Source: Carpediemonas membranifera BICM
Taxonomy: Eukaryota; Protista; Fornicata
NCBI GenBank assembly: GCA_019828565.1
Contig: JAHDYR010000028.1
Location: forward strand, 124,001 to 188,000
Direction: 5' to 3'
Length of the DNA: 64,000 bases
Position 1 is the first letter of the stretch, and every line of letters begins with the position of its first letter. The notes beneath the pieces are model-generated. The model was given only the letters and a program-made list of their open reading frames with translations, searched no databases and was not told the origin of the DNA. Positions 2,888-64,000 of the stretch are shown piece by piece. The translations under genes were made by a program, and so were the position numbers.

Positions 2888-3991
2888 TTGGTCATATGGT
2901 TGCTTACTATAAATGTGTTCGTTATCTGCGGTCACTGTTTGTTTCTCTGTAATTCTCTGATACTTTTGCTGCGATTCTTCGTTGGCGAGTTCCACAACAT
3001 CTTGACGGTGGTTGAAGAGACATCACGATGGGTGACGCTGATCCCACTGAAGACGACATCCTCGCGTGAGACCATTGATGCGTTAGTCCGGCACTACCTG
3101 ACCCACTTCCCCGTGCCGGCCGAGTGGGTTGCTGACAACGGCTCACAGTTCGCCTCAACCGAGTTCCACGCGTGGGCACGGGAGACGGGCGCGAAGGTGG
3201 ATCACACGACGCCGTACTACCACGAGGAGAACGGAGTGGTCGAGAGATGGAATAAGGAGGTCAATCGCCATCTGAGGTGTGAGATGTACGAGCGGCAGAC
3301 ACACAGGTGGGCGAGCCTGCTACCTGCCATCCAGAACATCATCAACTCCGCCCGTTCGAAGGCGACCGGGTCGTCAGCGTGGAGGTTAGTCGTGGCAGAC
3401 GGGACCAAGGCGGCTGTCGATAAGCTCAAGGCGCAGAGGATGCAAGAGACCGAGGCTGCGCGCAGGATGGTTCAGAACGAGGAGCACAGAAGGAAGAACA
3501 TGGCGCAGACGGCGAGGAAGATGGGCGAGAGTCAGCAGCGCGCGGCGGACATACAGAGACAGCACCCGCAGTCTCCGGTGACGGCTGGGCTGTGGGTGTT
3601 CGTTGACAGAGACGCCGAGATCCGCAAGAAGTACGATTTGAAATGGCGCGGGCCTTTGATGGTGATTAGAAAGGTGCCCGGGAAGAGCAACTCGTTCATC
3701 GTCAGAGATCCGGAGACGAAGACGTACAAGAAGCACGTCAGTCACTTGAAGGTAGCCAAGGGTGAATGGAGTGAGGAGAAAGCCAAGGTCGCGTGCGCGC
3801 TCGACAGAAGTCAGGCGTACATTAAGGAGATCGTAGACTGGAGAGTAAGGAGAGACGGTAGCAAGACACCTGAAGTGAAGTGCAGATGGCTAGGATTTGA
3901 AGCTAGCGAAGATACCTGGAGAGCGGCGACAGACGAAGACATGCGGTCCAACATCGTGCTACTGAAGTACATGGAGGGCACAGGCAGCTAA
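2888..3991 (+). mobile_element. chromovirus integrase + chromodomain of a second family, 5'-truncated
   Basis: ADNGSQFAS...TPYYHEENGVVERWN; KWRGP; VKCRWLGFEASEDTW. Confidence 0.92.
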
Positions 3992-4053
3992 CCAAGTGCA
4001 TTGAAGACTATTTGTTCAGAGTCGGTCGGAGTCAGGAACGGAGGATAGCCGCT

Positions 4054-4166
4054 GAGGAGGAGGGGTAGTGTGATTTACGTGTTACGTGTGTAGAGAGATC
4101 GGTTTAGACCATATTAGCCATAGGGTGAAACCTGTAAAGCATTCCGAGCCACGGTTCCGAACTTCA
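4054..4166 (+). repeat. PPT (4054-4068) and short 3' LTR starting TGTG at 4069
   Basis: GAGGAGGAGGGGTAG|TGTGATTT after the integrase stop. The CA end at 4166 is tentative. Confidence 0.55.
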
Positions 4167-4627
4167 ATATAGCGCAACACTGCACCCTTGGACTGCACGT
4201 TTAAGTCAATTGTTGTTCAAAGCTACTCACATCTGATGACATGTCGGCCATTGCCATTCCGCAAATTCTGCACACCAACCTAGATCACTATCAGACGACG
4301 ATCCGAAGAACGGCTATCATCACTCCCGATGGGAACACGCCTGCCCTTCGGTCTGACAAGCGCGTCCGCATATTTGGCCATGGTTTCAGCCTTCATCATT
4401 CGAGACACCTGACTCTGGTTGACTTGGTAAAACCCATCAGTGGTTGACCAACTCCGCCCTGTTCGCCAGGCGCGGGCTAACATCACGATTGACACACTGG
4501 CCCGCTCTGTTTTACAAGGTGGCTAGGACGCCCGAAAAAAGAGGTCTTTCGAAGCTTGGCTTGGATCCGCATGACTCCGGCCAGTCCAGGCTGTTCATAT
4601 GATCCGGTTGTGTTTATCACTCAATGG

Positions 4628-6442: not shown

Positions 6443-6625
6443 TGACAGGAGAACGGTGCAGTTTAACACAACAATTCTGATCCTGCGCGGCACACTACCT
6501 CCACTCACCCACTTCAGCCCTCGTCTGTACAACCGGGCTTTCGTGCTTTCAGTCGTCGGTCTGCACGAAAAGATGCGTCGTCTGTCGTCCATCGTCTGTT
6601 TCAGGCTCTCGCCGGAACCGGGTAA

Positions 6626-9708: not shown

Positions 9709-12700
9709 AAGCCCTGCCCCCGGTTCTCAGGGTCGAAGGCGTTCCCCACGATCGAGAGCACACTGATGACGGTGCTGCAGCGGTGCCAGGTGGCCGACGC
9801 GGACACCCGGGCGGGTTTGGGGGAGCGGCTCTCCATTGCAATGGACGCCGAGCTGTTGTAAACGCGCGTGGTCTGCAGTAGAATACTAGGTGCCGGCACA
9901 TCATCCCCATGTCAGACGGTAAGAAGCCAGCAGCTCGAGATGCTGCGTGCAGCACTCGGAGTTGCAGTGGGACAAGTCCTTGTGGACGTAGCAAAATGGG
10001 GCTGGCTGGGTCCGGGTTTCCTTGCTGAGCCAAGCCAGGTCGGGGCACCGTGATCTTTCATGTCGATCGCACGAAGCGCCGAGACGGACGGGACGACGGC
10101 AGCGGGAGGGCCTGCTGGTGATGACTGGGAGCAGGGCACGAGAGGCGTCGGACTAGGGACAACACTCTGACACTTCGTGGCGGACGACGTCGAGCCACTG
10201 CACCGCCGAAATCGAAGCCAAGACCTGGTTTAGGCCGCTACTGGTTCACCGCAGGGCGGCAGCGGGCGCCGTGCCTACGGCGTCCGGTCTCTAGGCGGGG
10301 GCTGCGCCTCGGTGAGAGGCAACACGCCTTCCGCAATCGTTGCTGGGGGATTACCGTCCACTTCAGGCTGGCGGCGATAGGAACCGGGCCGGACCTAATT
10401 AAACAACACGACTTCGAGAAGATTCTGACCTGACTTGATCTGACGACATTTGACGACTCCAAACTGTGATTTTGCCCCTATTTTGTAGCCGCATTTTAAG
10501 GTCTTCGGGTCTGTGCTATTGAAGGGTCCAACAATGGGTTTATACTGCGCAACACTGCCCTGTCTCACTCCTACTCACGTCTTAAGTCGGTAGGGAGATC
10601 GTATTCTCCAGGGCTTTCACAAAGCGTCTTCTTCGTGGACGTCAGCACAGCTGCAAACATCACAATCGCTCACACGTCGTCTCATTGTCTTCTATTCCAC
10701 ATTAAATTCACTTCTACACTTGTATATGCTGGTAATGGTGTTCATCGTCGGCTCTTATATGTCACCTTCATCAATGACCAGCTGCACACCTGTAGTGCGC
10801 AACAAGATGGAGATATATACGATCAAAGCCTCCATCAACCAAGCTTTCAGACAGAACTACACCGAAGAACGGAGAGTGGGGATTACGCCGCAGCAAAATA
10901 TCTCTACTCATGCCTGCTGGCCCGGCTCGCGGTTGAATGCTATGCGCAGCGCCGGCAACTCCCCCTACATGACGCCGACTTCCACAACGGACTGCTCACT
11001 CATGTACGCGGCGGTCATCCGGGTCAGGCCTACGCGGCCATCGTGCAGGCGCTCGACACTCTGCCGATGTGGCGGGGAGACTACCACGCGGGATCTGGTC
11101 GCGCAGCTCGAAGGTCGTGCGGAGTCGCATGGAGTGAGTCCCAGTCTCCGGAAGTGGTTCACCCGATACGCCAACTCTGTGAAGCTGTGGCTCGCCCGCA
11201 CGGTGACGACGTACCGTGACAGGCTACAGAGCACCCTCGCCCGACTCGAAGAGGCCCTCGCAGGTGTTGGTTCTCCGGCCTTCTTCCAGCAGGAGTTGGC
11301 CGGCGTTCACGCCATCCTCAACATGGTCAACCCTGAGATCCTCGCGTGTCTCCCCTCGCTGTTCTGGGCGACTCACATGGGTGAGAACGACGGGCTCCCA
11401 GTCTCTCAGGCTGCCCCACGCATTCTCTCTTGCGTCTGGGCAATTGCTGACGGAGTGGAGACGTTGAGTGGCCTCATCAGCCACTTCAACGGGGAGTACT
11501 CGATGTCGCTCCGCCAGCCTCGCCTCGTGCCGATCGTGCCCATGGCCCCCGTCCGACCGGGCTTCATGGCCTACGGTGAAACGATGGGCCTACTGAATGA
11601 TAATTTCTGCCATCGTGTGGGAATTAATCCCACACTCCCACACGCCACCCGCCGTCTGCTCAGCCTGAGCACCGATGGGGTCTGTGTGGCGGTGACGGTT
11701 AAGCGAGGCGGCCGCTATCGGCCACAACATGATGCGAGCATGCCTGTTCGAAAGCGAGCGAAATGGCGGGAGAAAGAGCGCCCCCGACTCGGGACCAATA
11801 ATGCCGAGGCTCCGCCCGCGCCGGATCCTGATGCCCACCTCATGGGGTTCGACCCGGGCGCGAGGTCCATCGGAGGGTATAGTATTACATCAGGCACCCC
11901 GATGGCACCACCAGCTCCGGCGTCCTTCCAAAGTGCGGATACACTAAGACGCCAAGTTTCGGCTTTGATATGACGGCCGCGTCGTTCAAGAGCACAAGAC
12001 TAGTGAGTATCAACAACTCTATTAGGTTTGTGCTGGACAACGCGAACGACATTTTCGAGGCTGGAATGCGTAAGTCTTTCCGCCGAGTGCGCTTTGCGAA
12101 CCACATCCTTCGCCAGAAGCACTTCGCCCGCTGCGGCCAACAGTTGGCTCGGGAGTTCGGTTGGCGTCGCCACCATCCCATCGCCACCCACATTCGCCTG
12201 AAAGTCTTCTACGGGAGCTCGGGATTCACCACGCCTGCTGGTATGTTCATTCCTTGCGCGCCATATCGAAAGTTCGCGAGAGAGATAGTTCCCCTTCTCA
12301 AGGGGTATAACATTGTCGTCGATCTTAACATGGTTAACGAGGACCGCACCACCGTCGTCTGCCCTCACTGCCACGCCCCCTGCAAGCGAGTTCGTCCGCG
12401 TGATGACCAGCACGTTCACCCACATCGTGTGATGCTCTGCGAAAAACCACAGTGCCGTGGTGCTCAGTGGCGCGCAACAGTTCCTGATGCTCTGAATGTT
12501 GATCATCGGGACAAGAGTGCTGCAGAAAACATCCTGTGGCGTTCTCTTGCCACGGAAGATGAGCTCAGTGGCTCTCCGTTCAGTCGCACATTGATCCCGC
12601 GCCTTCCAACATCATTCCAGTATCATCAATTGGCTAACCGCCAACATTCGTCTACGGACGGATGATGTTGTGCAGTTTGGCACTTTGATCGTTCCTTTCA

Positions 12701-12740
12701 GGCCCTGTCTGGAGGTTCGAACAATGTGTTTATACTGCGC
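9709..12740 (+). repeat. copy 1 of a near-identical inverted duplication (partner 18390-21415)
   Basis: Direct comparison shows near identity, with a +1 G (11074-11077), a net +5 nt indel (~11877) and a few substitutions. Confidence 0.97.
10807..12665 (+). pseudogene. Fanzor1-like RuvC nuclease, frameshifted copy
   Basis: Same protein as 18465-20317, but split just after RuvC-I (GFDPGARSIG) by a net 5-nt indel. Confidence 0.85.
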
Positions 12741-12945: not shown

Positions 12946-14754
12946 CTACATCATCCAATATGTCCAGGTCGTCCTCCACCCAGGCCGGCAGCTCCACCGG
13001 GGACACGGGGCGGCTGTCAGCGCCATCCCATTCTTACCGGACAGCGCTGAAAGGTGCGGGTGGACCTTGGCGACCTTGCCCTCTGTGGGCCGGCTGGACT
13101 TGAGACGGGCGCCCACCCGGGCCTTGCGGGCCTTGTTCGACGTCGGAACGTCCTTGGTCACCAGGGCTGGGGCCGCCGCGGTGAGCACAGGGAGAAGTGG
13201 ACCCCGGGCCCGCTTAAGGTCGTCAATCAATTGATTAGGCAGCTTAAACTGCACAGTAATCTCCATGATCTCGTCGAAGCTCTTGACGGGGTTACCGGGC
13301 AGCAAGGTCTGTGCGGCCGCAAACATGGCCTCCGACTCCTTCCTGGCTGCCTCGGTGAGCAGGGCGTCTGCTGTGGCGAGCTGGGCGATGACTCTGCCCC
13401 AAGAGTTGGTGTAAATGCGGTAGACCTGGACCATATCTGCCTCCTCGGCGGTGGGGAGGCCAGTGTCGATGATGGAGATGTCGGCGAGGGTGTCCAGCAG
13501 AGGGACCCTCAGCTTCTGCCGGGCTACCCGGACTCGGCTGGCGTCGAATACGGCCCCGTCGGCCTCAGGCACGCCCTCCATGGTCAGCGCGGTCAGGTCC
13601 TTGTCAACCTGCAGGGCCATGGCGCTGGCTCGGGCCTCGACGAGCACTTTAGGGATGTGGAGCACGGACGAGACCTCCCCCAGGACCTTGGAGCCCGTCA
13701 GCCGGGCCGTGATCGTCGCCAGTCTGACCTTGCGGCGGGACTCGTCCGGTAAGTTCCTGAGGGCCTCGACGACGGCCTCTCGGATGTCGGGACGGGACAG
13801 CCAGTGGTCGAAGACAGTCTCCTCGCACATGTAGGGGTCTGCCGCGACGACACGGACGGTCGGCAGGGAAATGATCGAGTCAAATGACAGGTTCATTTCA
13901 GGGGGGACGGTGTCGGCTGCCCGGACGAAGGCGGCCGTGTTCAGGGCCGTGTGGACAAACTCGACCAGCCCATCCCGGCACTCGGGGCTGAGAAGCGTGT
14001 CGTCCATTCGGATCACGCCGTCCTCCTGAGCTACGGCGTCCCAGGCGGCCTTGAGATCGTCCGTCCCCATTGCCACCCTGGCCGCGAACCCGACCTTGTC
14101 GACGGTGCCGCGGACTACGCTCTTGAGCCGGTCAGTGTACTTGAACGGCAGGAACCGCGTGCCCCTGACCTCCCCGAGGGCGGTGATCTTTGGGTCGCGC
14201 CACATCCGCAGTGCCGAGAGGGCGAAGGACACGGGGGCCGGCTGCATCGACAGGTCAGCCTCGGCCTCCTCAATGGCTGCGATGAGGGCCACGATGCCGT
14301 CCTTGTAGTACTGCGCCGGGTACACCCAGCGGTCGTGTCCCACGTGGTGGCCATCCTCGAGCAGCTTCTCCGTCACAGCTCTGGCCTGGGTCGCGGTCAG
14401 CTTGAACTCCGCGCGGATCTGGTCGATGTTGATGGGCATCACAGGGTTCTGCTCGATACGGCCGGCGACAGTCGATGCGACACGGTTGGGGAACGAAGTC
14501 AAGCATATGGTGCCGTCAACAAGCTCCACCTCGGTGTCGGAGGACGCAATCTCGTAGCAAACAGCCTTAATGTCGCTAGATAGGACATTAAGCTTCTCAC
14601 TGAGAGCTCTGAAGGACGTACTTCCCTCGTCATTGACGATGTCGTGAATATGGCCACGGACGAAGCTACGGAGCATCACAGTCTCACGATCTATCGAATA
14701 AAGCACGTCGAGACCTCTTTTCTCGATAACAAAGTTCAGGAACTGCTCATCCAT
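12946..14754 (-). CDS. UFL1: E3 UFM1-protein ligase 1-like (C-terminal end uncertain)
   Basis: N-terminal LDVLYSIDRE...IHDIVNDEG...LSEKLNV matches the UFL1 winged-helix start. Confidence 0.7.
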   Translation of the reverse strand: MDEQFLNFVIEKRGLDVLYSIDRETVMLRSFVRGHIHDIVNDEGSTSFRALSEKLNVLSSDIKAVCYEIASSDTEVELVDGTICLTSFPNRVASTVAGRIEQNPVMPINIDQIRAEFKLTATQARAVTEKLLEDGHHVGHDRWVYPAQYYKDGIVALIAAIEEAEADLSMQPAPVSFALSALRMWRDPKITALGEVRGTRFLPFKYTDRLKSVVRGTVDKVGFAARVAMGTDDLKAAWDAVAQEDGVIRMDDTLLSPECRDGLVEFVHTALNTAAFVRAADTVPPEMNLSFDSIISLPTVRVVAADPYMCEETVFDHWLSRPDIREAVVEALRNLPDESRRKVRLATITARLTGSKVLGEVSSVLHIPKVLVEARASAMALQVDKDLTALTMEGVPEADGAVFDASRVRVARQKLRVPLLDTLADISIIDTGLPTAEEADMVQVYRIYTNSWGRVIAQLATADALLTEAARKESEAMFAAAQTLLPGNPVKSFDEIMEITVQFKLPNQLIDDLKRARGPLLPVLTAAAPALVTKDVPTSNKARKARVGARLKSSRPTEGKVAKVHPHLSALSGKNGMALTAAPCPRWSCRPGWRTTWTYWMM

Positions 14755-15288
14755 GGACTCGAATGATCGAGCTTATCCTGCGGGTTCAACTACTGAAGTC
14801 TGCTATAGACGATTGAGAGTTACTTTACTGCTTGCACTGTGCACTCTATGATACTTCAACTACCGGGCCTCATCGCCACTCTGAACCCGGCGGTCATTAA
14901 TGTCATGCCGCACTTGTTCCGGGGAGACAGTGTGACGACCTCTCCTGTGTGGCCGCAGAGTTCTACTAAACCATGGCAGGATTCGAGTCAATGTCACAGC
15001 TCAGCCGAACGGCCTGCAACGCGTCACCGCCGGCGAGGCTGCTGTCTTCCCCTCCGCCCACGGCAAGCCCGCCATTGAACCCTGGACCGTCATCGGTCCA
15101 TCGCCACTCGACGCCTCATGAGGTAAGTGAGATTGGCCAAGCCATTTTTGGCGGGAAGGCCGCACAGACGCTTCTCTCGTCGAAGTCCCATGACATCTTG
15201 TAAAAACCGCACTCATGACGTCCCACTCCGCTGCACTTTCCCACCTTTATATGTTACATATCACTGTGGCCGAGCTATGTACGCACTG

Positions 15289-18240
15289 CTATGTCTCGTG
15301 GTCGCTGCTGTAAGGGTCTAGGAGCGACAGGTCGTCGGTGGGGGTACCAGCGGGTGCCCGCACCTCTTTGGATACTCTCGACGATGATGGGCTTCGAACT
15401 ATATTCTTGACCAGCCCTGGAAACAGAGAAAGGATGGCGAGAATGACGGGCGCGATAAGCGTGACACCGGTGGGGCAATGGCTGTAGACCCTCGTGACAG
15501 CCGCGGCGACGCCACCACCGGCGATCATGATGAACGGTTTCTTCTCGCCCGTGGCGAAGTTCGTCTTGTCGCTGCCGAACCACCCCTTGTCCTTGTTCCG
15601 CAGGTACCAGGCCCAGGTGCGGACGTCGCGCGTGTTGGGCTGGGGGTCGTGTGGGCAGTAGCAGCGGCTGCAGATGCCGGGGACAGCCGTCTTGACGTGG
15701 CCATAGTCGAACCAGGTCAACCTCTCACCGTTGATGCACTCCACCGTCTCGAAGAAGTGGTTCCACCCACTCATGGCGTCGGCAAGCCTGAAGTTCCAGA
15801 TTTTCTTCCAATTCCGGCCAGTGTTGAGATAGCCCGTCATGTGGTGGATCATCGTGTCGTTGTACACTGCCAGCAGCATGCCGTGCGTCTGCTCGAGGGC
15901 GGCATCGATTTGATTGTACCCGGAGGCAAGGAATGGTACGTTTCGCATCTGGTTGATGGCGAAACAGCTGAGTAGCTCCTGGTCTGAAAAAGCCCAGAAC
16001 TGTCCAGGGAACTGGCAGCAGTTGGCAGGGTCCTCGGCAAACATGACCAGATCGTTGAAAATATCGCCCAGACGGGGGAGGTCGAGCTTGACCATGCCTC
16101 CGTTGATATGCCAGTCGAGCATGATGTCTTTGGTGAAGGTGATGGGGCTAGGGTGCTCGAAGAGGGCGTCGGGGTTCTTCATGACGAACATGTCGATGTC
16201 AATCATCGCCATGCGCTTGACCGGACGGGACCCGATCTTGCTGAGATATGTGTTAATATTGAGCGAAAGAATGCGCTGGAACGCGCCGAAAAAGGCCTCT
16301 GACTGCACAGTCAGGAGCTTGAGAAGTTCATGGGGCAGCGCGTCGTCCACGAATACATACTCTGCATTGAGCTCGATAAAGCCGTGCATGATGTCGGGGA
16401 ACTTCGTCAGGTCGTCGTGGGACGCGATGATGATGCGCGCCTTGGAGTAGAGGCGGAGGCTGAGCACGAAGGTCAGCGTCTGCCCGGCGTACACGTGGTC
16501 GGCCTTGGTCAGCCACACGACGTACGCGTCGTCGGCGGGGTTCACCGGGACGCGGCGGGTCGTCATCCACTCAGCGGCCTCGAACCGCTCGTCCAGCGTC
16601 ATATACATAAAGGGGAAGAAGTTTCCAGCGGTGACCCCCTCCACGCCCTCTCTCAGCGTCCCCAGGTGTGCCACTGGCCGGACCATGGGCTCTGGGCGAT
16701 CATCCCCAGGATACAGCATGGTCTTCCGGAACCCGGCCGATGCTACACGGTGGATCTTGTCGTTAGTCTGTGCGACGACGTCGGGGGTGAGTAGCGAGAG
16801 GTCCTGGCTTGTCAAGAAGGGGAACCAGCCGACGTCGAGTTGGCGCACGGCGGCGATGGCGTCTGCCACGGTCGGCTGGGTGGCGAGGGCGTGGGTGACA
16901 TGGTCGACGTTGGCATCGCCGTTGGCAATCACGGCGACGTTCAGGCTGCGGTGGAGCTGGAGCCCAGCTCCGTAAGCCTCTTGGGCGTACTGGGAGCGGA
17001 ATATGACGCCGGGGTCAAGCAGGGCCAGCTGGAACCAGCCGGGGTGCTCCCTCTGGAGGCCCTTGATGACGGTGACCAGGTCGTCTTCCCGTCGCGCGTG
17101 GGTACGCTTGACCATTCGGACGTCGCCCATCGCGGTGGCCTTTCGGGCGAAGTCGGTGTCGGTGGAGCTGACGAGCACGCGGACCTGCGGGATGCTCGAG
17201 GCGAAGGCGTGGACGTCGTAGAGCGACATCAGGAAGCGCTTGCAGTCGCGCTCGGCCTCGGGCGTGTCGGCCCACGTGACGAAGATCGCGGCGTTCGTGC
17301 TCTGCGTGTCTGCGTAGGCGAGCGATGTGTCGGGCGTCGGCGTCATGTCGGTGTATCGGAAGATCTCGACGGGGGTGGTTGTGGTCATCAGGCCGGCGAA
17401 CGCGAGGGCGGCGAGAAGCGCCACGGCTTGCATGATGCGGTGACGCCGCACTGCGGGCGAGATGTCCAGCCGCATGTGCACTCTAAGGTACGCAACGGAC
17501 AGGGAGAGCGTCGAACCGACTGCGATGACAAGGACCTCGGTTGTCGGCGCGACTATGGTCATCAGCACGATGGCGCCGGCCAGAGCGTACGGGAAGAGCA
17601 GGACCGGCGTGTCAACGGGATCTACCTGCGAGATGGTGACGAAAGCCTGTGCGTGCAGCGCAATGGTCGCTGCGAAGGCGACGCCGATTGTCGCGCAGCA
17701 TAGGAACGAAGCGGACAGGGGAAGCAGGGTGATGAGACGAGGCAGGTCGAAGACGACTGCAAGAACAAGCGCGCCAGCAGGGGAGCAGGGGAGCATGTTG
17801 GATGTGGATCCGCGCGACCACACGAGAACAGCTACAGCTATTAACAATGCACTCACAATGGCGCCGGCCAATGAGGAAAGAGAAGACCGTTCGACAACAA
17901 AAGCGATCATAGAGGCGACGAATGTCCATGTCACCAGGGACAGAACTGTCAGTGTGAGCGAGGGAACCGACGCGTTCTTCCAGGAAGAGAGAAAAGCAAG
18001 GGACCGATTCCGGTGCCGGTGCTTCAAGGCCACTGTGGCCGCATAAATGAGTGTAAGAGTTGCTAATGCCACAATCTCGGCCTCTATTAGCGCTTCGTCG
18101 CGCCATGGAGGCACCAAGTGACGAAAAATTGCGGCTGCGACAGGAAGTAGCAGGGCTGTAAGGTAAAGAAGTAATACTACACGTATTCTCGTTGTTGGGT
18201 TGTGAAAGCCCACCAGCAATGAGTCCTCGGATCCTGGCAT
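15289..18240 (-). CDS. multi-pass membrane protein with GT8-like (GT-A) glycosyltransferase domain
   Basis: Many N-terminal TM helices; MIDIDMFVMKNPDALF (DxD), INGGM, SDQELL, IHHMTG. Confidence 0.7.
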   Translation of the reverse strand: MPGSEDSLLVGFHNPTTRIRVVLLLYLTALLLPVAAAIFRHLVPPWRDEALIEAEIVALATLTLIYAATVALKHRHRNRSLAFLSSWKNASVPSLTLTVLSLVTWTFVASMIAFVVERSSLSSLAGAIVSALLIAVAVLVWSRGSTSNMLPCSPAGALVLAVVFDLPRLITLLPLSASFLCCATIGVAFAATIALHAQAFVTISQVDPVDTPVLLFPYALAGAIVLMTIVAPTTEVLVIAVGSTLSLSVAYLRVHMRLDISPAVRRHRIMQAVALLAALAFAGLMTTTTPVEIFRYTDMTPTPDTSLAYADTQSTNAAIFVTWADTPEAERDCKRFLMSLYDVHAFASSIPQVRVLVSSTDTDFARKATAMGDVRMVKRTHARREDDLVTVIKGLQREHPGWFQLALLDPGVIFRSQYAQEAYGAGLQLHRSLNVAVIANGDANVDHVTHALATQPTVADAIAAVRQLDVGWFPFLTSQDLSLLTPDVVAQTNDKIHRVASAGFRKTMLYPGDDRPEPMVRPVAHLGTLREGVEGVTAGNFFPFMYMTLDERFEAAEWMTTRRVPVNPADDAYVVWLTKADHVYAGQTLTFVLSLRLYSKARIIIASHDDLTKFPDIMHGFIELNAEYVFVDDALPHELLKLLTVQSEAFFGAFQRILSLNINTYLSKIGSRPVKRMAMIDIDMFVMKNPDALFEHPSPITFTKDIMLDWHINGGMVKLDLPRLGDIFNDLVMFAEDPANCCQFPGQFWAFSDQELLSCFAINQMRNVPFLASGYNQIDAALEQTHGMLLAVYNDTMIHHMTGYLNTGRNWKKIWNFRLADAMSGWNHFFETVECINGERLTWFDYGHVKTAVPGICSRCYCPHDPQPNTRDVRTWAWYLRNKDKGWFGSDKTNFATGEKKPFIMIAGGGVAAAVTRVYSHCPTGVTLIAPVILAILSLFPGLVKNIVRSPSSSRVSKEVRAPAGTPTDDLSLLDPYSSDHET

Positions 18241-18385
18241 TCAGTTGCCGTACTCCGCAGCTTAGGGCTTTGCATAATTTTGTGTACCGCGTATCATTGT
18301 ACGCTGGCCCTAAGTGTGAGCATGCCTGCGTACGCAAACCTGAGGGGTAGCTGGGGGATCACAAATTTTCCACAGATTCTGACCC

Positions 18386-18464
18386 TGTTGCGCAGTATAA
18401 ACACATTGTTCGAACCTCCAGACAGGGCCTGAAAGGAACGATCAAAGTGCCAAACTGCACAACA
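18386..18464 (-). ncRNA. candidate Fanzor omega-RNA scaffold / element end
   Basis: Starts exactly after the nuclease stop. Its ends pair (TGTTGTGCAGT / ACTGCGCAACA, one G-U). Conservation between copies ends here. Confidence 0.45.
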
Positions 18465-21415
18465 TCATCCGTCCGTAGACGAATGTTGGCGGTTAGCCAA
18501 TTGATGATACTGGAATGATGTTGGAAGGCGCGGGATCAATGTGCGACTGAACGGAGAGCCACTGAGCTCATCTTCCGTGGCAAGAGAACGCCACAGGATG
18601 TTTTCTGCAGCACTCTTGTCCCGATGATCAACATTCAGAGCATCAGGAACTGTTGCGCGCCACTGAGCACCACGGCACTGTGGTTTTTCGCAGAGCATCA
18701 CACGATGTGGGTGAACGTGCTGGTCATCACGCGGACGAACTCGCTTGTAGGGGGCGTGGCAGTGAGGGCAGACGACGGTGGTGCGGTCCTCGTTAACCAT
18801 GTTAAGATCGACGACAATGTTATACCCCTTGAGAAGGGGAACTATCTCTCTCGCGAACTTTCGATATGGCGCGCAAGGAATGAACATACCAGCAGGCGTG
18901 GTGAATCCCGAGCTCCCGTAGAAGACTTTCAGGCGAATGTGGGTGGCGATGGGATGGTGGCGACGCCAACCGAACTCCCGAGCCAACTGTTGGCCGCAGC
19001 GGGCGAAGTGCTTCTGGCGAAGGATGTGGTTCGCAAAGCGCACTCGGCGGAAAGACTTACGCATTCCAGCCTCGAAAATGTCGTTCGCGTTGTCCAGCAC
19101 AAACCTAATAGAGTTGTTGATACTCACTAGTCTTGTGCTCTTGAACGACGCGGCCGTCATATCAAAGCCGAAACTTGGCGTCTTAGTGTATCCGCACTTT
19201 GGAAGGACGCCGGAGCTGGTGGTGCCATCGGGGTGCCTGATGTAATATCCTCCGATGGACCTCGCGCCCGGGTCGAACCCCATGAGGTGGGAATCAGGAT
19301 CCGGCGCGGGCGGAGCATCGGCATTATTGGTCCCGAGTCGGGGGCGCTCTTTCTCCCGCCATTTCGCTCGCTTTCGAACAGGCATGCTCGCATCATGTTG
19401 TGGCCGATAGCGGCCGCCTCGCTTAACCGTCACCGCCACACAGACCCCATCGGTGCTCAGGCTGAGCAGACGGCGGGTGGCGTGTGGGAGTGTGGGATTA
19501 ATTCCCACACGATGGCAGAAATTATCATTCAGTAGGCCCATCGTTTCACCGTAGGCCATGAAGCCCGGTCGGACGGGGGCCATGGGCACGATCGGCACGA
19601 GGCGAGGCTGGCGGAGCGACATCGAGTACTCCCCGTTGAAGTGGCTGATGAGGCCACTCAACGTCTCCACTCCGTCAGCAATTGCCCAGACGCAAGAGAG
19701 AATGCGTGGGGCAGCCTGAGAGACTGGGAGCCCGTCGTTCTCACCCATGTGAGTCGCCCAGAACAGCGAGGGGAGACACGCGAGGATCTCAGGGTTGACC
19801 ATGTTGAGGATGGCGTGAACGCCGGCCAACTCCTGCTGGAAGAAGGCCGGAGAACCAACACCTGCGAGGGCCTCTTCGAGTCGGGCGAGGGTGCTCTGTA
19901 GCCTGTCACGGTACGTCGTCACCGTGCGGGCGAGCCACAGCTTCACAGAGTTGGCGTATCGGGTGAACCACTTCCGGAGACTGGGACTCACTCCATGCGA
20001 CTCCGCACGACCTTCGAGCTGCGCGACCAGATCCCGCGTGGTAGTCTCCCGCCACATCGGCAGAGTGTCGAGCGCCTGCACGATGGCCGCGTAGGCCTGA
20101 CCCGGATGACCGCCGCGTACATGAGTGAGCAGTCCGTTGTGGAAGTCGGCGTCATGTAGGGGGAGTTGCCGGCGCTGCGCATAGCATTCAACCGCGAGCC
20201 GGGCCAGCAGGCATGAGTAGAGATATTTTGCTGCGGCGTAATCCCCACTCTCCGTTCTTCGGTGTAGTTCTGTCTGAAAGCTTGGTTGATGGAGGCTTTG
20301 ATCGTATATATCTCCATCTTGTTGCGCACTACAGGTGTGCAGCTGGTCATTGATGAAGATGACATATAAGAGCCGACGATGAACACCATTACCAGCATAT
20401 ACAAGTGTAGAAGTGAATTTAATGTGGAATAGAAGACAATGAGACGACGTGTGAGCGATTGTGATGTTTGCAGCTGTGCTGACGTCCACGAAGAAGACGC
20501 TTTGTGAAAGCCCTGGAGAATACGATCTCCCTACCGACTTAAGACGTGAGTAGGAGTGAGACAGGGCAGTGTTGCGCAGTATAAACCCATTGTTGGACCC
20601 TTCAATAGCACAGACCCGAAGACCTTAAAATGCGGCTACAAAATAGGGGCAAAATCACAGTTTGGAGTCGTCAAATGTCGTCAGATCAAGTCAGGTCAGA
20701 ATCTTCTCGAAGTCGTGTTGTTTAATTAGGTCCGGCCCGGTTCCTATCGCCGCCAGCCTGAAGTGGACGGTAATCCCCCAGCAACGATTGCGGAAGGCGT
20801 GTTGCCTCTCACCGAGGCGCAGCCCCCGCCTAGAGACCGGACGCCGTAGGCACGGCGCCCGCTGCCGCCCTGCGGTGAACCAGTAGCGGCCTAAACCAGG
20901 TCTTGGCTTCGATTTCGGCGGTGCAGTGGCTCGACGTCGTCCGCCACGAAGTGTCAGAGTGTTGTCCCTAGTCCGACGCCTCTCGTGCCCTGCTCCCAGT
21001 CATCACCAGCAGGCCCTCCCGCTGCCGTCGTCCCGTCCGTCTCGGCGCTTCGTGCGATCGACATGAAAGATCACGGTGCCCCGACCTGGCTTGGCTCAGC
21101 AAGGAAACCCGGACCCAGCCAGCCCCATTTTGCTACGTCCACAAGGACTTGTCCCACTGCAACTCCGAGTGCTGCACGCAGCATCTCGAGCTGCTGGCTT
21201 CTTACCGTCTGACATGGGGATGATGTGCCGGCACCTAGTATTCTACTGCAGACCACGCGCGTTTACAACAGCTCGGCGTCCATTGCAATGGAGAGCCGCT
21301 CCCCCAAACCCGCCCGGGTGTCCGCGTCGGCCACCTGGCACCGCTGCAGCACCGTCATCAGTGTGCTCTCGATCGTGGGGAACGCCTTCGACCCTGAGAA
21401 CCGGGGGCAGGGCTT
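18390..21415 (-). repeat. copy 2 of the inverted duplication (includes the TAF6 3' end)
   Basis: Reverse complement of 9709-12740. Confidence 0.97.
18465..20317 (-). CDS. Fanzor1-type RNA-guided endonuclease (TnpB/Cas12 superfamily); open frame 18465-20489, likely true ATG at 20317 joined across a G4 run
   Basis: STDGVCVAV; RuvC-I GFDPGARS; VFYGSSGF; VNEDRTT + CPHC...C-x4-C zinc finger; RuvC-III HRDKSAAENI. Confidence 0.88.
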
Positions 21416-49603: not shown

Positions 49604-50343
49604 TGTAATCAATTGATGACTGATTTACCCCGGATCAATTAAATCACTCTCTGTGTTTCCTGCTGCAACAATATATATTGCCATGGTAGTACCGGAAACA
49701 GTACTGAACTGCGCACCCTACCTTAATAAGGTCTCTGAGGCGGAGTGGCGCCATATGGTTAAGTCCTGGCGTGCTTATGCCGCTAGGTGCCGTGATCCGA
49801 TTGCTATTTTCGACCTGGTGTCAAACGAAGTGCTCGAAACGTTTAAGTGCCGTTCTCCCATGCTGGGCTCTTTTCTCCAGGTGGTGGATGAACCGATGGA
49901 TGAGCATGACCCCGATCGTGAGACGGAGTGGAACGAGGAGTTTATAACAAGATGTTCCAACCTCTCGACGAGCTAGAGGCCATCGAATGGCTGAAGAAGC
50001 TGAATTGCCCCGAGTCGGGCAATCTCGTCGAGAACATGGCCGATTACGTGCTGACATTCAAGGAGACGTGTTCCTACTTCGGCGAGCTGCAGCCTCAAGC
50101 CAAGCAACTCGTGGAGGCGTTCGTCGCGGGAGTCCGCTATCAAGTCCTGAGAGCGAATCGGCGCCAAGAAGAAGAGCAAGGATCTGGAGGAGACCATGAA
50201 GGTGGCTTTTGAGCAAGCCCTGGAGGCTGAGAAGGGTAGACGTGAGGCGCAGCGTCAGTCAGTTGAGTCGAAGGGCGAGAAGACCAAGAAGAAGCATGAA
50301 AACAAGGCGTCTACCAAGTGCCCCTACTGCAACAAGGTGGGCC
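49604..50343 (+). mobile_element. 67-bp 5' LTR (49604-49670) + frameshifted gag
   Basis: TGT..ACA unit, ATG at 49683, gag-like helices, start of a zinc knuckle (CPYC) cut by the next LTR. Confidence 0.65.
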
Positions 50344-51568
50344 TGTCGCAACACCGTATTAATATTTATATATTTTATGGGTGTCGAAATAAATTAGCGC
50401 ATCGTTACAACAGTGAATTCACTAGTGGCTACATGTTCGGTAATATTTCTCTGCCGACTCTGAGCGTTGAGACATTGACTAGCGAAACCTGGCGCTCATT
50501 TAAGAGGGATGCCGCCCGAATCAAGGCGTTGTATCCCGCCGCCAAGCTGGCTGTCCTCCTCCCCAATGACCTGCAGGACATCATCGAGGACACTCTCAAC
50601 GTAGACCTGGCGAAGGCAAATGACGACAAGATTGACGAATACGTCAGCAAGTTCCTTGCTCCGGTGGACAAATTGTCCCTTGTCAAAGAGCTCGAGGCCG
50701 TCACCTGCCAGGTATCTGAAAAAGAATCACCTCCATTCGCGCGTACGTCAGCGCGTTCTCAGCAGTTTTCTCTAAGGCCGAAGACATCGAAGAGTCCGAC
50801 TCGGACGAGGACGAAGAGGAACAAGAAGAGGACGAAGAAGACATTTCCCCCTTTGAGAAGAACGCGCGTAAGATCTTCCTTCAGGGGATCCGCCCATCCA
50901 CTTTCCGCAAGGTCCTGGACTTTGAACTCAAGGAGCATCCTAAGAGGAAGTCACTTGCCGATGCATACGAGCTGAGCATTGTCCTCGCTCAAGAAGATGA
51001 CGACGCTCGGGCTAAGGCCATTCGCTTTGGTCACTACCAGGCCGGAAAGTCCTCCACCCGAAAGAAAGGAACGGCCGCAGGAGGCCAACCGCCTCGCCTC
51101 CCGGTCCCGGGCGCAGTTGCCTCAGGGGCCCCGGAGAAGTCTTCCACTCTCAAGCCGAACGACGTCAACCCAGCTTTGAAGCCTCCCCATCGTGCCTGTG
51201 GCAAGTGCGGCGGATGGCATTGGGATAATCAGTGCCCCAATGGGGCCCCAATGCGCTCTCGCCAAGAAGGAGGCGGCCTCCGGTCCAACCCGAAGAAGAA
51301 GGAGCCAATCGAGGCTAATCTCCTGGACACGGACCCCGATGAGCCACTCAAAGTGTCTGGTCGTATAAACGACCAAGAGTATTCCTTTATTATTGACACT
51401 GGAGCACCAAAATCTATCATCTCCGCTGCGTCAGCAGAGGCCCTTGGCCTACAGACAGTGACCGGCCCGACCCTCCGCTTCAGAATGGCGAACGGTTCCA
51501 TTTCGACAACTAACCACTATACTGAGGCTTGGTTACACCTCACGCTGGCGGGAGCCCCAACGCGGTGA
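50344..51568 (+). mobile_element. 69-bp 5' LTR (50344-50412) + frameshifted gag, zinc knuckle and aspartic protease, truncated
   Basis: TGTCGCAAC...GTTACAACA; CGKCGGWHWDNQC; FIIDTGAPKSII. Confidence 0.8.
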
Positions 51569-51609
51569 TGGATGTGCTGGGAGGCAGATATGGCATACTG
51601 TCCAGGGTT

Positions 51610-51691
51610 CAGGAATTTCCCTTATTGGGTAGGGGAATTTCCTCGGGCTTTCCCCCGAGGAAATTCCCTGATTGGATAAGGGAAATTCCTG
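51610..51691. repeat. 82-bp inverted repeat (16 + 15 bp perfect stems)
   Basis: CAGGAATTTCCCTTAT/ATAAGGGAAATTCCTG and GGGAATTTCCTCGGG/CCCGAGGAAATTCCC. Confidence 0.95.
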
Positions 51692-52191
51692 GTGGCTCAC
51701 TCAATATTAAACTGTTTTAATTAATTATGTCATGTGCGTATACTTCATCGACTCAAGTAACCTTCCCCATTTCAGACATTTTTTTCACAACAAGGCTGAG
51801 TAGAATCTTCTAAGTGGTATACATGCACTCCCCTACCAGTAAGAAGCATGCATACCAACTTTCAAATTCTAAATCCTGCTAGAAAAAAGTAACATAGGGA
51901 CAAATATTCCTTGGGAGTTCAGACTCAAAAATCGGGCAGGGGGGAGGAAATGGTCCATAAGTACGCCTTATGGGTCGCTTCCTCCTCTCTGCCCTTTTTT
52001 TATTGACTTCTGATTTGCCAGATTTGACACATGTTCGAGGTGAGTCTTAGATTACTCAAAATGGCCTCCTGATTCAGCAGATAGACTCAAAATTTCACAA
52101 TTCGTACTCAAAACCAATTTCAACAGACGTCTGTTGCAAAATCTGCCAAAAACGCACTTTAAAGTCATTTTTGCAACAGACGTCTGTGGAA

Positions 52192-53444
52192 ATGGTCTTT
52201 AAGCTCTCCGCTGCCGATTTGACGCAACTACACAAGACTAACTACAGTAATACGTACATTGCCGACATTAGCGGGGTCAAAACTGTCGTCAAGGTCGATA
52301 ACTGTATGACACTTCGCCTGACACACGAAAAGACGATACTTCAGGCAATGAAAAGCCCATTTATTGTTACAATCGTCGATGTGGGCTTTGTTGACAGCGA
52401 TCAAGCGTTTGCCACTCGCTTTGTTGACCATATGTCGTGGCGAGACGTTCTGGCACTACCAGTACCGGATCAATGTCGCTACTTGCGGCACTTACTGTTA
52501 GCTCTCAGCCATGTGCATGAGAATGGATTCATCCACGGCGACATCAAGCCCGACAACTACCTTTTCAACCGAGAAGACGGTGGATTACTCATTGACTTCG
52601 GCTCTGCCATCAAAATAGAGGCTCCTACTGGGATTAACAGGTATATGGGACAAGACATGAGAGGGACACCTGGTTTTATCCCCCCGAGCTTCGTGCCGAC
52701 GAACTCAGTCGGAAATCGAAGCATTGTACAGTAGCTATGCGGGAACCACAGAATTTGAACCCCTTCCAGGCTTCCAGGAACACCACAACCAGAAACACCA
52801 ACATGCACACAGTTGATGCGGCATACGACATCTTTTCCTGCGGCGTTATCGTCCTCATGATGGCATTGCGACTGGATAAGTCTCCATTTCGATCTGTGAG
52901 AGTGGATGGTGGCAAGCCAAGTAACCCAGACGAGCATATTGGCGCTCTATATAACATGGCGTACTTCTACGGCCGCGAAATCACGATACACAGCAAGAAG
53001 AAGAATGCAGCCCGTGGTTTGATGATCAATCCGACTCTCTGCACGAGAGGAAGCCCTCCGACACAGTATAGGAGCCTTTATGACCTTGCAATGGGGATGC
53101 TCAGCTATAATCCGGAGGATAGACCAACAGCTTTGATGTGCGCTGAACATCTCAACGATATCGCCGCCCTAGCAGCAACGTTCGCATCAACACCACTGAT
53201 GATCAACGACCAGGTGACAATCTCTCAGGAAACGCTCGCTGCCGCCAAACTCACCGTTGAAGCACTTCGAGAAACCCGATTTGCTGGCCGATGCATTGCA
53301 TGTGGCATGCCGGTTCACGATAATCGAACAATAACTTGCAAGACACACCACCAAGATTACAGAAGCATCATGAACCCCCACACAAAGAGAAGAGGACGAG
53401 TTTGGAGGGTTCATCGTGATCTATCATTGATTATTGATATGTAA
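52192..53444 (+). CDS. CDC7-like Ser/Thr kinase with C-terminal Cys/His motif; split by a frameshift in a C run (~52680-52685)
   Basis: YLRHLLLALSHVHENGFIHGDIKPDNYLFN, DFG, RGTPGFIPP(E after +1 C), DIFSCGVI, RPTA. Confidence 0.8.
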
Positions 53445-53892
53445 CCGCCCAGTATCGAATCACCTCACTACCATGGGATGATCGCATTCACCTTCAAAGA
53501 AAGAGATGAGGCCGCATACTCGACCAGATATAAAGGAGATATGCTGCAGCCTTGAAAAGAAAGAAAGAAAGAAAGAAATTTATGGTGCTTGGATTCTGAC
53601 CCCCGGACTGAGCTTGTTTCCCGTGCTGCAGCCTTGCGCTGGCTTTATAGACAATACCCAGTTGTTTACACTAAAACCGAAAAATCAGTCCAGTAGACGC
53701 TCGAATCGAACTGGAGTGGGGTGGCTGTGATACAGTGTTCGTTCCTGTAGTACCCAGGCAGAAGACCCGACCGGACGATATGGCCTGGAACTCTACCGGC
53801 AAAAAGCAGCTGGCGGCCGCTGAGGAATATGTGGAAGGCGCTTCCAGAATGATCTTTACACTACTTTCTTTGCTTCTATCTTGTACTTACTG

Positions 53893-55572
53893 TTAATCAC
53901 TCTCATCATCTTTTTGTCTACTTGTGGATGACGGAGCGCCTTCCTGTATTTGCGCTTTTCTTTTGATACCCTCTGGGAGACTGACAAGTTCCGCATGGTC
54001 GTCCTGGAGCAGAATAAAGTGGGTAATGCCATGTCTGGAACAGAACACCTGGAAATTCTCACAACGATCAGCAGCTGAGTCGCCAGAAGGGTACAAACCC
54101 CAAAACTGGTGACCATGTGTGAACAATATCACTGTAGAATTATTACCGTTGTTGCACACCATGATGACATTACGCATGTAGATCATGGAAAACTCTCGCA
54201 CAGCATCATCGGTAAGCCAGCCCATCTTGGAAAACAGTTCTGCCTTAGCGGAATCCTCCGTCAGAGCCGTCCGCTTCACCCGGCTTTCCACCAGCTCGGC
54301 ACGCAAAGCCATGGCTGCCTCAAGATCTGTTCTGTGGGTCAGGGTGGTCATATCCCGGAAATGGCCGTCCCTAATCATGCAACAGCAGTGCGCAACACAG
54401 CTGCCATCACGGTGTGTCGAGTATTTCCTCCATGACTTCAACCCATTCACAATTTCCTCAACGAAGGACTGTGGCTGACCGCTGGTGCCGATTGGAATCT
54501 CTTTCTTCTCAATCATATTGTTGATGTGAGACTCAATGGCCACAGATGACTCGTGTTCAGACTTGATCAAGAGCAGAGAGCGAAAGTCGACGATCTTAGC
54601 AGTGGAATCGAAGTTCGGGTACGCAGGCCGGTAAACCTTGTTAAGCAAAGGATAACAACGCGGCGGGAGTCTTGCGTCTTCCTCCGATACGATCTTCGCT
54701 TTTGCACAACCGTCAGGTCTTGCGATAATGACTCTTCGCTTCATGTACGAGAGCTTGGACATCCAGAACCAGAATTGCGCGATCTCATGGAGGTGATCTG
54801 GCTGAGTCATGATTCTGATGAGCCACGTGGCGTCATGGGCGGCAAGTTCGACGGCGGGTAGCTCATCTGGTGTCAAAAGCACCACACACCGTTGCATTGT
54901 GAACTTGAACTTGCCAGAATACAACTGAAAGATCGGCCGTGGGTCACGGGCGGAAGACTGGCAGGCGGCAATATACACACCCATGATTCGGGCGAACTTG
55001 CAGACATGACTCTCATAATTCTTCAGAATTGCCTCGATGAAGTCGAAGGCAGTTGTCCAGATGGCTGGTATCGTGCGGGCATCGACCACAAACCGACCAT
55101 CAGAGTCCGAGTGACCAGTGATAATGAAAAAAGTCTCATAGTCACCATACAGCTTGCCGAATTCCTTGATTTTCGCCTCAAAATCGTCCTCGTTCTCGAA
55201 CTGGGCCGTCTCGATAACCGTATACTCGCTATGCATTGCCGCAAAGATCTGACGAATGCGTTCTGCGTGCCCTCCAATGGAGACAGATTCATCAATCGAA
55301 AACTGCCTGCTATCTCCAGCAACGAACCCATAGGTTGGCTCGAACACGATGAGGACACGTGTATTCTTCAGCGCCAGTGCAGTACGGGTGCACTTGTGAC
55401 GTCGGGATGGCGAGGGAAAACCGACGTTGCGTGTTTCGCTACTGATGTCCCCACAGACACATTCAAACAGCTTTGATCCATCCAGATATCGATTTCTCCA
55501 CCCCATTGCATTGAAAAATGTCTGATCGTCGTTCATGACGCCAATGCCAAATTGAGGGTGAGAAAATGGCAT
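53893..55572 (-). CDS. caspase/CHAT-fold protease-like domain fused to an OTU-like domain
   Basis: IITGHSD ... YIAACQS dyad; DGSC ... GWL...FSMIYMRNVIMV ... LLQDDHAELV. Confidence 0.6.
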   Translation of the reverse strand: MPFSHPQFGIGVMNDDQTFFNAMGWRNRYLDGSKLFECVCGDISSETRNVGFPSPSRRHKCTRTALALKNTRVLIVFEPTYGFVAGDSRQFSIDESVSIGGHAERIRQIFAAMHSEYTVIETAQFENEDDFEAKIKEFGKLYGDYETFFIITGHSDSDGRFVVDARTIPAIWTTAFDFIEAILKNYESHVCKFARIMGVYIAACQSSARDPRPIFQLYSGKFKFTMQRCVVLLTPDELPAVELAAHDATWLIRIMTQPDHLHEIAQFWFWMSKLSYMKRRVIIARPDGCAKAKIVSEEDARLPPRCYPLLNKVYRPAYPNFDSTAKIVDFRSLLLIKSEHESSVAIESHINNMIEKKEIPIGTSGQPQSFVEEIVNGLKSWRKYSTHRDGSCVAHCCCMIRDGHFRDMTTLTHRTDLEAAMALRAELVESRVKRTALTEDSAKAELFSKMGWLTDDAVREFSMIYMRNVIMVCNNGNNSTVILFTHGHQFWGLYPSGDSAADRCENFQVFCSRHGITHFILLQDDHAELVSLPEGIKRKAQIQEGAPSSTSRQKDDESD

Positions 55573-55633
55573 CGCACTTTAAAGCAGCTTTATGTGAGAA
55601 ATGTATTGCATATAATTCTGCATTCAGAAGACG

Positions 55634-56492
55634 ATGGCTAGAACAAAGCAAACGGCTCGCCGGCCTACGCAAGGTGGAAAGGCGCCTCGCAAGCAGTTAG
55701 CAGCGATAGCTGCGCGGAGAGCGAATACTTCGTCGTACCGCACCTACAAGCCGTTGTCTCAGGCCGCGTTGGAGAATTGCACGGCAGTCCTGCAAAAGGC
55801 TGATGCTGATATCCAAGAAACTATTCTGTCGTGCATCAAGAAGACGGAGGCGCACAACTTCAAGCAGATGGTCAAGAATTCAACACGAGCTGGTTTCCGA
55901 CTTGCATTCAACACTGAGTCCGAGTCTGTCCACATGAACCCATCGAGGAAGGACGAGGTGGCAGCGCGGGCAGAAGCTGCTTACCAATCAGCGCTGCATG
56001 CCTTCCGCAGCGTTGACCCTGAGACTGCTGCGACAGAAGATATGAAGACACTGCTTGACACCTTAGCGGTTGCTCTTGACGCAACGCCAGATGTGCCACA
56101 TGCTCGCCTGGATCCTGAAGAACAGCGTCGGTTCCTGAAGCTGAAGGATACGAAGAAATTCTCCAAGTACTGCCTTCCTCGCAGTGACGAGAAGTTTTTT
56201 CTCGACCAATCTTCGCGCTGCCTTGCGCGAACACCTGGCGAAGGTGTTTCCAAACCTCCCTTGGAACAAGATTGTCTCCTGCTTCTCCCCTGAAGCGATC
56301 AATGCTGATTTCTTTATCCTGTCCACGAGCAATGCCACCTACGACGAAGCTTGCCTGACAATGCCGTCTGATGAGAGAAAGAAGCTTCGCAACCATCTTT
56401 CCATGACTGAAGAACGGCAGATTGCTCGTCAAGAGATGGAGGTTGAGATTTACCAGTTTTTAAGAGAGCTCGGTATGTTCTCTACAGTGTAA
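55634..56492 (+). CDS. histone H3-tail protein / highly divergent H3 with C-terminal extension (probable frameshift at T6 ~56195-56200)
   Basis: [29 protein letters not shown]; weak H3-fold echoes (RTYKP..AL, FKQMVK, ALHAFR..EDMK). Confidence 0.75.
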
Positions 56493-56581
56493 AAGATGCA
56501 ATTGTTGACCATTGACTCGATCAGCGCGCCTCTAAACCCCACTATTCGAAGGCGTCTCTGCGGGCTGAAGAGACATAAAGG

Positions 56582-57340: not shown

Positions 57341-57597
57341 GTCCGCCCAATTTGCATAGACACGACGCGCAAGCTCTTCCGGAAAGCAATCGCAGCAAAG
57401 TTGACAGTTCCACTTTCTTGCTGCATTCTACGCAGTTTATACCAGCAGTTTATACGCAGCAATGACACAGCACCAAGAGCGTGGCACACAACCCTTCAAT
57501 GACCCATGTAAGGTTGGGTGGGTCTTATGTCAGGCTGTTTCTTTTCAATCATTTCAATCATATCCTGCACAGACTTCGTTGATGAAGAAGTTCTGCT

Positions 57598-59063: not shown

Positions 59064-59114
59064 AAAAGCTCAGAGATGCCGTTATAGATGATATAACGAC
59101 GTCTCTGAGCTTTT
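59064..59114. repeat. 51-bp hairpin
   Basis: AAAAGCTCAGAGATGCCGTTATA-GATGA-TATAACGACGTCTCTGAGCTTTT. Confidence 0.9.
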
Positions 59115-63971: not shown

Positions 63972-64000
63972 ATTAACGCCATACTCCTGAGAAGGCGCTG

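Follow-up and report, generated by a model that had tools for sequence, protein, structure and literature searches.

The Fanzor Locus and Its Mobile Element

The analysis concerns a stretch of 64,000 nucleotides of the Carpediemonas membranifera BICM genome (contig JAHDYR010000028.1, positions 124,001–188,000, forward strand; hereafter the window, to which coordinates refer unless given otherwise) and, within it, a Fanzor1-like gene, for a Cas12-like and probably RNA-guided nuclease, together with the mobile element that carries it, here copy 2 of family A. The element and its borders comprise:

18386–20612, minus: whole element, copy 2 of family A, 2,227 bp, with TG..CA ends and direct terminal repeats
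20613–20617, plus: left target-site duplication, GACCC
20570–20612, minus: left end, a 43-bp miniature long terminal repeat (mini-LTR), which occurs also as solo units with 5-bp duplications
20548–20569, plus: polypurine-tract-like run (18 purines in 22 nt) that immediately precedes the left-end repeat
18465–20489, minus: Fanzor1-like open frame, 674 codons, GTG start
18386–18464, minus: terminal hairpin, 79 nt from the stop codon to the right end
18386–18420, minus: right-end repeat of 35 bp, 89% like the left end, whose outermost 8 bp are missing from it
18381–18385, plus: right target-site duplication, GACCC

Homology among copies stops at 20612 and 18386; the element begins with TGTG, ends with CAACA, and has a direct repeat of 27–35 bp common to both ends. 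The purine richness of the run at 20548–20569 is matched by less than 1% of 22-mers in the window. A search of the assembly (24.24 Mb, 69 contigs) yields 96 protein matches and 233 end-motif matches and, with stricter patterns, 114 left-type and 65 right-type ends. Close reading covered a sample of about 50 copies and ends. Exact 5-bp target duplications, variable in sequence, are seen in 21 of 29 Fanzor copies. Most copies are internally deleted, yet have inserted with duplications of their own. The notable part of the present results, on which the original prediction for this DNA was silent, is where the element begins and ends, how many copies of it there are, and its probable LTR-retrotransposon carrier.

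The 79-nt hairpin has a folding energy of −38.2 kcal/mol (z −5.9 for the gene strand and z −3.5 for its complement) and closes at the last base of the element; in B and C, two sister families described below, the hairpin likewise ends its stem precisely at the right end. It is a candidate omega-RNA scaffold or, on the other strand, a priming or packaging structure. Contigs of four putative RNA runs (one sample) cover the element, most densely at both ends, with strand and ends unreadable. At four sampled loci (L046, L048, L044, L035), family A ends enclose an unrelated interior, or a different sequence ends in the right-end motif; the element shell may capture other cargo.

The Encoded Protein

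The landmarks of the 674-codon frame are:

19272–19274, minus: RuvC-I Asp406 (DPG)
18789–18791, minus: relocated RuvC-II Glu567, followed by six residues and then the first CxxC
18675–18770, minus: C4 zinc finger, Cys574/577/600/605
18618–18620, minus: RuvC-III Asp624 (HRD)

All motifs named in the original prediction are found in this frame, namely, TDGVCVAV at codon 346, GFDPG at 404, FYGSSGF at 523, VNEDRTT at 565, CPHC at 574, CEKPQC at 600, and HRDKSAAENI at 622. The copy 2 protein contains the Fanzor pattern of Bao & Jurka 2013, D-X(125,275)-[TS][TS]-XX-C4 finger-X(5,50)-RD (PMC3627910). The signature of Yoon 2023, DPG at RuvC-I and Glu six residues before the zinc finger (PMC10711439), is present as D406-P-G and E567-x6-C574, and is kept also in families B and C. 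According to Jiang 2023, the canonical RuvC-II Glu is changed to Gly or Pro, about 45 residues ahead of the new Glu; here FYG at 523–525, 42 residues before E567, fits, the position being assigned by spacing. The D-E-D triad and the four cysteines are conserved in families A, B, and C, whose proteins are 40–50% identical. The ratio of nonsynonymous to synonymous polymorphism (pN/pS) is 0.52 for shared variants vs. 1.18 for singletons, the difference being not significant (p = 0.11).

Homology support for the Fanzor identity is weak yet concordant across methods: PF07282 is matched in 8 of 9 aligned members (best E 0.006, score below threshold); a profile search of the PDB puts Cas12f on top (E 0.03, score below threshold); the ESM Atlas gives a score of 0.97 to TnpB-like clusters from eukaryotes and giant viruses; and Foldseek, with a poor model as query, ranks three Fanzor1 structures first, PpFz1 and SpuFz1 among them (E 0.04–0.15). 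AlphaFold models have a predicted local distance difference test score (pLDDT) of 35–39, too low for the fold or the active-site geometry. The profile and structure comparisons proposed by the original prediction give weak matches to PF07282, Cas12f, and the Fanzor1 structures, and its Fanzor1-type protein in an anaerobic protist is supported by these, by the Atlas score, and by the signatures.

Pfam and PDB searches with the whole protein gave no match, a VIA search gave nothing at Z ≥ 5, and scans of viral and metagenome contigs for Fanzor homologues gave no match. Homologue searches in 5.8 and 1.8 billion proteins returned the own family alone, every named match being from Carpediemonas. 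No homologue outside Carpediemonas turned up that could anchor a tree of the Fanzor1 clade. Our literature search found no paper naming both Fanzor and Carpediemonas. Judging from its sequence, the protein is very probably a Fanzor, and length, motifs, and Foldseek ranking favor Fanzor1 specifically, with good though lesser confidence. Two family members, P0042 and P0028, bear the database names "cytosine deaminase" and "chromosome partition protein Smc," which are probably misannotations or gene-model fusions.

A Probable Gypsy Partner

The first 14 bp of the element recur in pairs 4,553 bp apart. One such pair is L051 (C27:103300–108700), a Ty3/gypsy element with zinc knuckle, reverse transcriptase, RNase H, integrase, and chromodomain, LTRs of 92 bp, and reading frames split at two places in the assembly. 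Its gag–reverse transcriptase–RNase H–integrase order, chromodomain, LTRs, and 5-bp duplication are those of a Ty3/gypsy chromovirus. The genome holds 35 LTRs of this gypsy, i.e., 16 full copies, two solos, and one LTR at a contig end; the integrases are 98–100% identical, and the 5-bp duplication is exact in all 15 of the ordinary full copies checked. As the original prediction had noted, no transposase adjoins either Fanzor copy of the window; the same contig does carry a likely trans-acting partner, about 16 kb upstream of the window.

At 29 of 31 nt, the Fanzor left end (20582–20612) agrees with the U5-side end of the gypsy LTR, and the matched 31 bp stand at the very terminus of either element (E 6e-8). 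The purine tract lies on the same strand beside the equivalent repeat in families A, B, and C and in two gypsy families; the Fanzor gene is therefore antisense to the retroelement strand. Head-to-head arrangements of gypsy and Fanzor copies with one common duplication occur several times.

Further observations concern the gypsy elements and their surroundings. In L051, 13 nt (L051:4795–4807) separate the 5′ LTR from the gag start, and a 10-bp palindrome spans the LTR edge. Comparison of L051:1–240 with window 18028–18262 places this gypsy inside a near-identical paralogue of the 5′ region of the gene neighboring copy 2. A sister Fanzor insertion at C27:113578 (L099) has the same left-end variant, and segmental duplications abound in this part of contig 27. 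The window itself holds, at 2990–4179 (plus), the 3′ part of a second chromovirus-type gypsy family, its integrase 53% like that of L051, with chromodomain, purine tract, and a 111-bp LTR (4069–4179) that ends in the same eight bases as the right end of the Fanzor element; an integrase-zinc-finger piece lies at 684–1328.

Target Motif and Probable Host Promoters

Counted from the left end, positions −21 to −11 hold a conserved 11-bp motif (GCAGKWTWRGG-like); the flanks are otherwise random. At copy 2 it is:

20623–20633, plus: host target motif CCTTAAAATGC, 11–21 nt outside the left end

The motif stands in the −21 to −11 register in 29 of 36 training flanks and at five of six held-out ends, the sixth being off by one base; it is seen in 0 of 43 right flanks, against a background of about 1.8 matches per kb on both strands. 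The gypsy inserts by the same motif, either in the same 11–21 nt register or on the motif's other side. Fanzor elements always point the left end at the motif (35 vs. 0), whereas the gypsy has no clear preference (3 vs. 6; p = 1e-5 for the difference).

Reading away from the element, an ATG followed by at least 150 open codons is found within 22–80 nt in 16 of 35 cases vs. 11% of random ones (p = 4e-7). Given this ATG excess beyond the motif, the target motif is probably a host promoter element; the host gene at copy 2 starts near 20675. A CCTWAWMCTGC-like motif (20623–20633, 18258–18268, and many loci) is observed 5–55 nt before host start codons, often in tandem, and is a candidate core promoter element of Carpediemonas. 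The small host gene between the target motif and TAF6 (20675–21260, plus) probably contains introns, is covered by a putative RNA contig, and is duplicated along with copy 1.

Sister Families B and C

Two sister Fanzor families, B and C, share the element build, with proteins 40–50% identical, but not the ends. In family C, the left end measures 65 bp and the right repeat 32 bp, a purine tract is present, and all seven insertions (7/7) lie 12 nt from the target motif, on its other side. Family B has a repeat of 26–28 bp, a purine tract, and the register of family A, as judged from few copies. One solo end of family C lies in the window:

14794–14858, plus: solo 65-bp family C end with 5-bp duplication ACTAC, 12 nt past the target motif

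It is situated just upstream of a UFL1-like gene (12946–14754, minus). A family B left-end fragment (repeat, pyrimidine tract, and first 100 bp) stands directly after a target motif at 6462–6602 (plus). Family B proteins looked up in the contig collection gave no match. The chimera seen at L015/L031 joins the left end and 5′ gene half of family C to the 3′ half and right end of family A, with two extra bases before the duplication.

Signs of Reverse Transcription and the Proposed Mechanism

Several observations point to copying through RNA. Six of the 16 unpaired left ends are solo 43-bp ends with exact duplications. The copies are mosaic: 157 of 276 informative pairs of single-nucleotide polymorphisms fail the four-gamete test, with fewer failures between close neighbors (p = 0.03), and there are chimeras of A with C and of B with C; gene conversion could also yield mosaic copies. 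In one copy, L040, a private base change recurs identically in the two end repeats. The large deletions have 0–1 nt of microhomology, and C. membranifera is without Ku-dependent non-homologous end joining (PMC8516963). Splicing was ruled out as a source of the internal deletions, which have no GT-AG ends.

Among the features of LTR retrotransposons, the TG..CA ends, the 5-bp duplication, the purine tract, the end shared with a partner (family A), and solo LTRs are present; two identical full LTRs and a primer-binding site after the 5′ LTR are absent. The element works like a non-autonomous LTR retrotransposon without being a canonical member of that class. It has its LTR end and target motif in common with a young gypsy, and its build goes together with solo repeats and recombined copies. 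We consider it, with a probability of about 0.72, to be a non-autonomous LTR-type retroelement with an antisense Fanzor1-type gene, moved in trans by a chromovirus-type gypsy.

Under this reading, plus-strand element RNA would be packaged and reverse-transcribed by gypsy proteins in trans, with the terminal repeat serving strand transfer and the purine tract priming the plus strand; gypsy integrase, tethered by a host factor at the promoter motif, would insert the DNA 10 bp from the motif. Priming and end regeneration would be non-canonical. More tentatively, Fanzor may bind an RNA made of the terminal hairpin and the flank, and might cut the empty allele when haploid cells fuse, repair then copying the insertion; such non-restorative homing would explain why a copy-and-paste element keeps a nuclease. 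The species is haploid, with sex inferred (PMC8516963). Homing into empty alleles during sex is our leading guess for the retention of the nuclease, inert or binding-only cargo being about as likely. The most far-reaching version, a retroelement-borne gene drive, in which an active RNA-guided nuclease is cargo of a reverse-transcribed element that parasitizes a promoter-targeting chromovirus, uses a remote promoter motif in place of a target-adjacent motif (TAM), and inserts itself into empty alleles during sex, seems to us rather unlikely.

A number of observations weigh against this picture. The two end repeats are unequal, the right one being shorter and diverged, while true LTR pairs are identical at insertion. 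A variant restricted to the right end, never seen on the left, occurs in many copies; left-end variants track deletion subfamilies; and the gypsy's base at a variable position is found in 57 of 100 left ends among the matches listed. The 5′ repeat of the element has neither the U5 part nor a primer-binding site, and no tRNA primer site was found in the Fanzor element or in the gypsy. For family C, no helper with a matching LTR was found, the candidates being a segmental duplicate. On the side of the nuclease, the 10 bp adjoining the left end hold no fixed sequence (at most 0.21 bit at −10 to −1), so that target recognition would be remote, very lax, or absent; for Fanzor1, the 5′ duplication forms part of the TAM (PMC13565253). 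The terminal hairpins of families B and C fold better on the retroelement strand, so that the hairpin may act in priming or packaging in addition to guiding or in place of it; read-through from the start codon is seen in 0 of 9 sampled copies that retain that codon; the structure models are of low confidence (pLDDT 35–39); and the putative RNA contigs reveal neither strand nor ends.

Alternative Explanations

The nearest competitor has the same carrier and differs solely in the role of Fanzor, which would be inert cargo or an RNA-binding or repressor protein without homing. It has a considerable chance of being right, if clearly less than even. The spread of mostly internally deleted copies, the absence of an intact copy among those sampled, the impossibility of an adjacent TAM, and the haploid state of a species whose sex is inferred only are all in keeping with it; the conservation of the D-E-D triad and the four cysteines in A, B, and C, the hairpin closing exactly at the right end in all three families, and the single orientation toward the motif, unlike gypsy (p = 1e-5), are not.

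Alternatively, the ends could be LTR-derived and now be moved as DNA, by cut-and-paste or copy-out, through an integrase-like DDE enzyme of Ginger type or the gypsy integrase, with Fanzor homing restoratively at excised sites. Ginger elements, too, typically have TG..CA ends and short duplications. Each end here is largely inherited on its own, and Fanzor would have its accepted role, restorative homing (PMC13565253). Still, we regard movement as DNA as quite unlikely: the repeats are direct rather than inverted, three diverged families have all retained the purine tract and partial repeat, the solo ends and the doubly shared private change of L040 fit reverse transcription, and no stand-alone transposase with these ends turned up in a search that was not exhaustive.

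That the protein might be an unrelated zinc-finger protein with similar short motifs, and no Fanzor, is very unlikely. Large sequence searches find nothing outside Carpediemonas, Pfam and PDB scores stay under thresholds, and the models have pLDDT of 35–39; against this, two published diagnostic patterns are fully matched, and weak independent methods concur (Atlas 0.97, PF07282 8/9, Cas12f, Fanzor1 by Foldseek).

Finally, a conventional Fanzor DNA transposon, with the likeness to the gypsy end due to chance or a nested insertion, would agree with all known carriers (Crypton, IS607, Helitron, Mariner, MuDR) and with the short direct repeats that Cryptons can have, and is hardly credible given variable 5-bp duplications that exclude tyrosine- and serine-recombinase and Helitron carriers, the lack of terminal inverted repeats, and a 31-bp match located at the exact terminus of each element (E 6e-8), along with the shared target register. 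The variable 5-bp duplications also rule out an IS200/605 element and the idea that the direct repeats are of a dif/Xer-like or Crypton kind, and a Tn7-like DDE transposon was dropped after the discovery of the gypsy. Fanzor as a repairer of solo LTRs was rejected: the solo end and the full element look alike for 27–35 bp before the flank.

The Two Copies in the Window

Two further features bear on the state of the copies:

20243–20246: frame break of copy 2, a homopolymer run one base shorter than in other copies
9709–12740, plus: copy 1, an inverted segmental duplicate of 18390–21415, with the element part at 10512–12740

The family ATG at 20317 (MEIYTIKAS..) is out of frame with the long frame of copy 2; the N-terminus read from the equivalent ATG resembles the N-termini of the sister families, and other copies begin there. 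The run at 20243–20246 is one base longer in all eight other covering copies (8/8) and in contigs of three putative RNA runs. The break is possibly a real mutation or a long-read error; indel errors in assembly repeats are likely, because gypsy copies with identical integrases differ in frame length. Copy 2 also lacks 54 nt (18 codons) at 19475, a segment which most copies carry and to which both sister families have a similar one, and at several positions its private allele is in no contig of the putative RNA runs. As assembled, copy 2 is thus not intact, and the activity that the original prediction thought possible is doubtful in view of the frame break near the start, the 18-codon gap, and the private alleles missing from the contigs; we think it improbable that this copy is an active enzyme, and it is probably a dead passenger.

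Copy 1 is 99.6% identical to 18390–21415, from which it differs by four substitutions and by indels at two sites. About 800 bp of host flank, with the 3′ end of TAF6, belong to it; the element's final 4 bp and the target duplication on the right are missing. Copy 1 is a segmental duplicate and no second insertion, possibly an assembly artefact. The gene had been described as present twice: a second, inverted copy does exist at 10512–12740, but as a duplicate, in a genome with 96 protein matches. Copy 1 is broken after RuvC-I, at 11877–11882, as had been predicted, and additionally before RuvC-I, at 11074.

Elsewhere in the window, the region 50000–64000 has a lower GC content (43–57%, mostly about 50%), kinase pieces, open reading frames of unknown nature, and long hairpins at 51610–51691, 52107–52203, 59059–59119, and 59154–59221; it is possibly another mobile or foreign region.

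Significance and Comparison With Known Systems

The known Fanzor carriers are of Crypton, IS607, Helitron, Mariner, and MuDR types (PMC3627910, PMC13565253); a 2026 review knows of no Fanzor case on an LTR retroelement carrier, and Jiang et al. 2023 reported just proximity of Fanzor to Gypsy within 10 kb. With all documented carriers of Fanzor and TnpB being DNA transposons, a gypsy-borne Fanzor in three diverged families would be a new carrier. It would challenge restorative homing as the reason for nuclease persistence, make non-restorative homing testable in a eukaryote, and partly explain the Fanzor–Gypsy proximity seen by Jiang et al. 2023. The absent adjacent TAM suggests an unusual target recognition, of interest for compact editors, and the fixed-register targeting of promoters reveals a likely core promoter motif of a poorly known protist.

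In common with Fanzor1 (SpuFz1, PpFz1, GtFz1), the protein has DPG, Gly at the old RuvC-II place, the relocated Glu before the C4 finger, RD at RuvC-III, and a length of about 600–650 amino acids, and a structured non-coding stretch ends at the right end of the element. Unlike there, whole-sequence homology is not detectable, the 5-bp duplication is variable, no adjacent TAM is fixed, and the carrier has neither a transposase nor inverted repeats.

Non-autonomous LTR retrotransposons include TRIM, LARD, and Cassandra, the last with 5S RNA as cargo. Like these, the element has short TG..CA repeats, a polypurine tract, 5-bp duplications, solo repeats, a passenger, and no mobility genes; unlike them, it has unequal repeats, no tRNA primer site, and, as cargo, a nuclease gene on the opposite strand.

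Targeted integration is known for chromovirus-type Ty3/gypsy elements, e.g., for Tf1 at RNA polymerase II promoters (PMC3553992) and Tj1 at RNA polymerase III genes (PMC4600332). L051 resembles Tf1, Tj1, and Ty3 in its chromodomain integrase, 5-bp duplication, and promoter insertion; it differs in its 92-bp LTRs, in the near single-base register from an 11-bp motif, and in having a Fanzor-carrying satellite.

As in the IS200/IS605 and IS607 elements with TnpB, an RNA-guided nuclease would be the passenger, and its guide would derive from the flank past the right end; those elements, in contrast, excise scarlessly and have their TAM where they insert. As LTR elements are not excised, only homing to an empty allele would apply here (PMC13565253).

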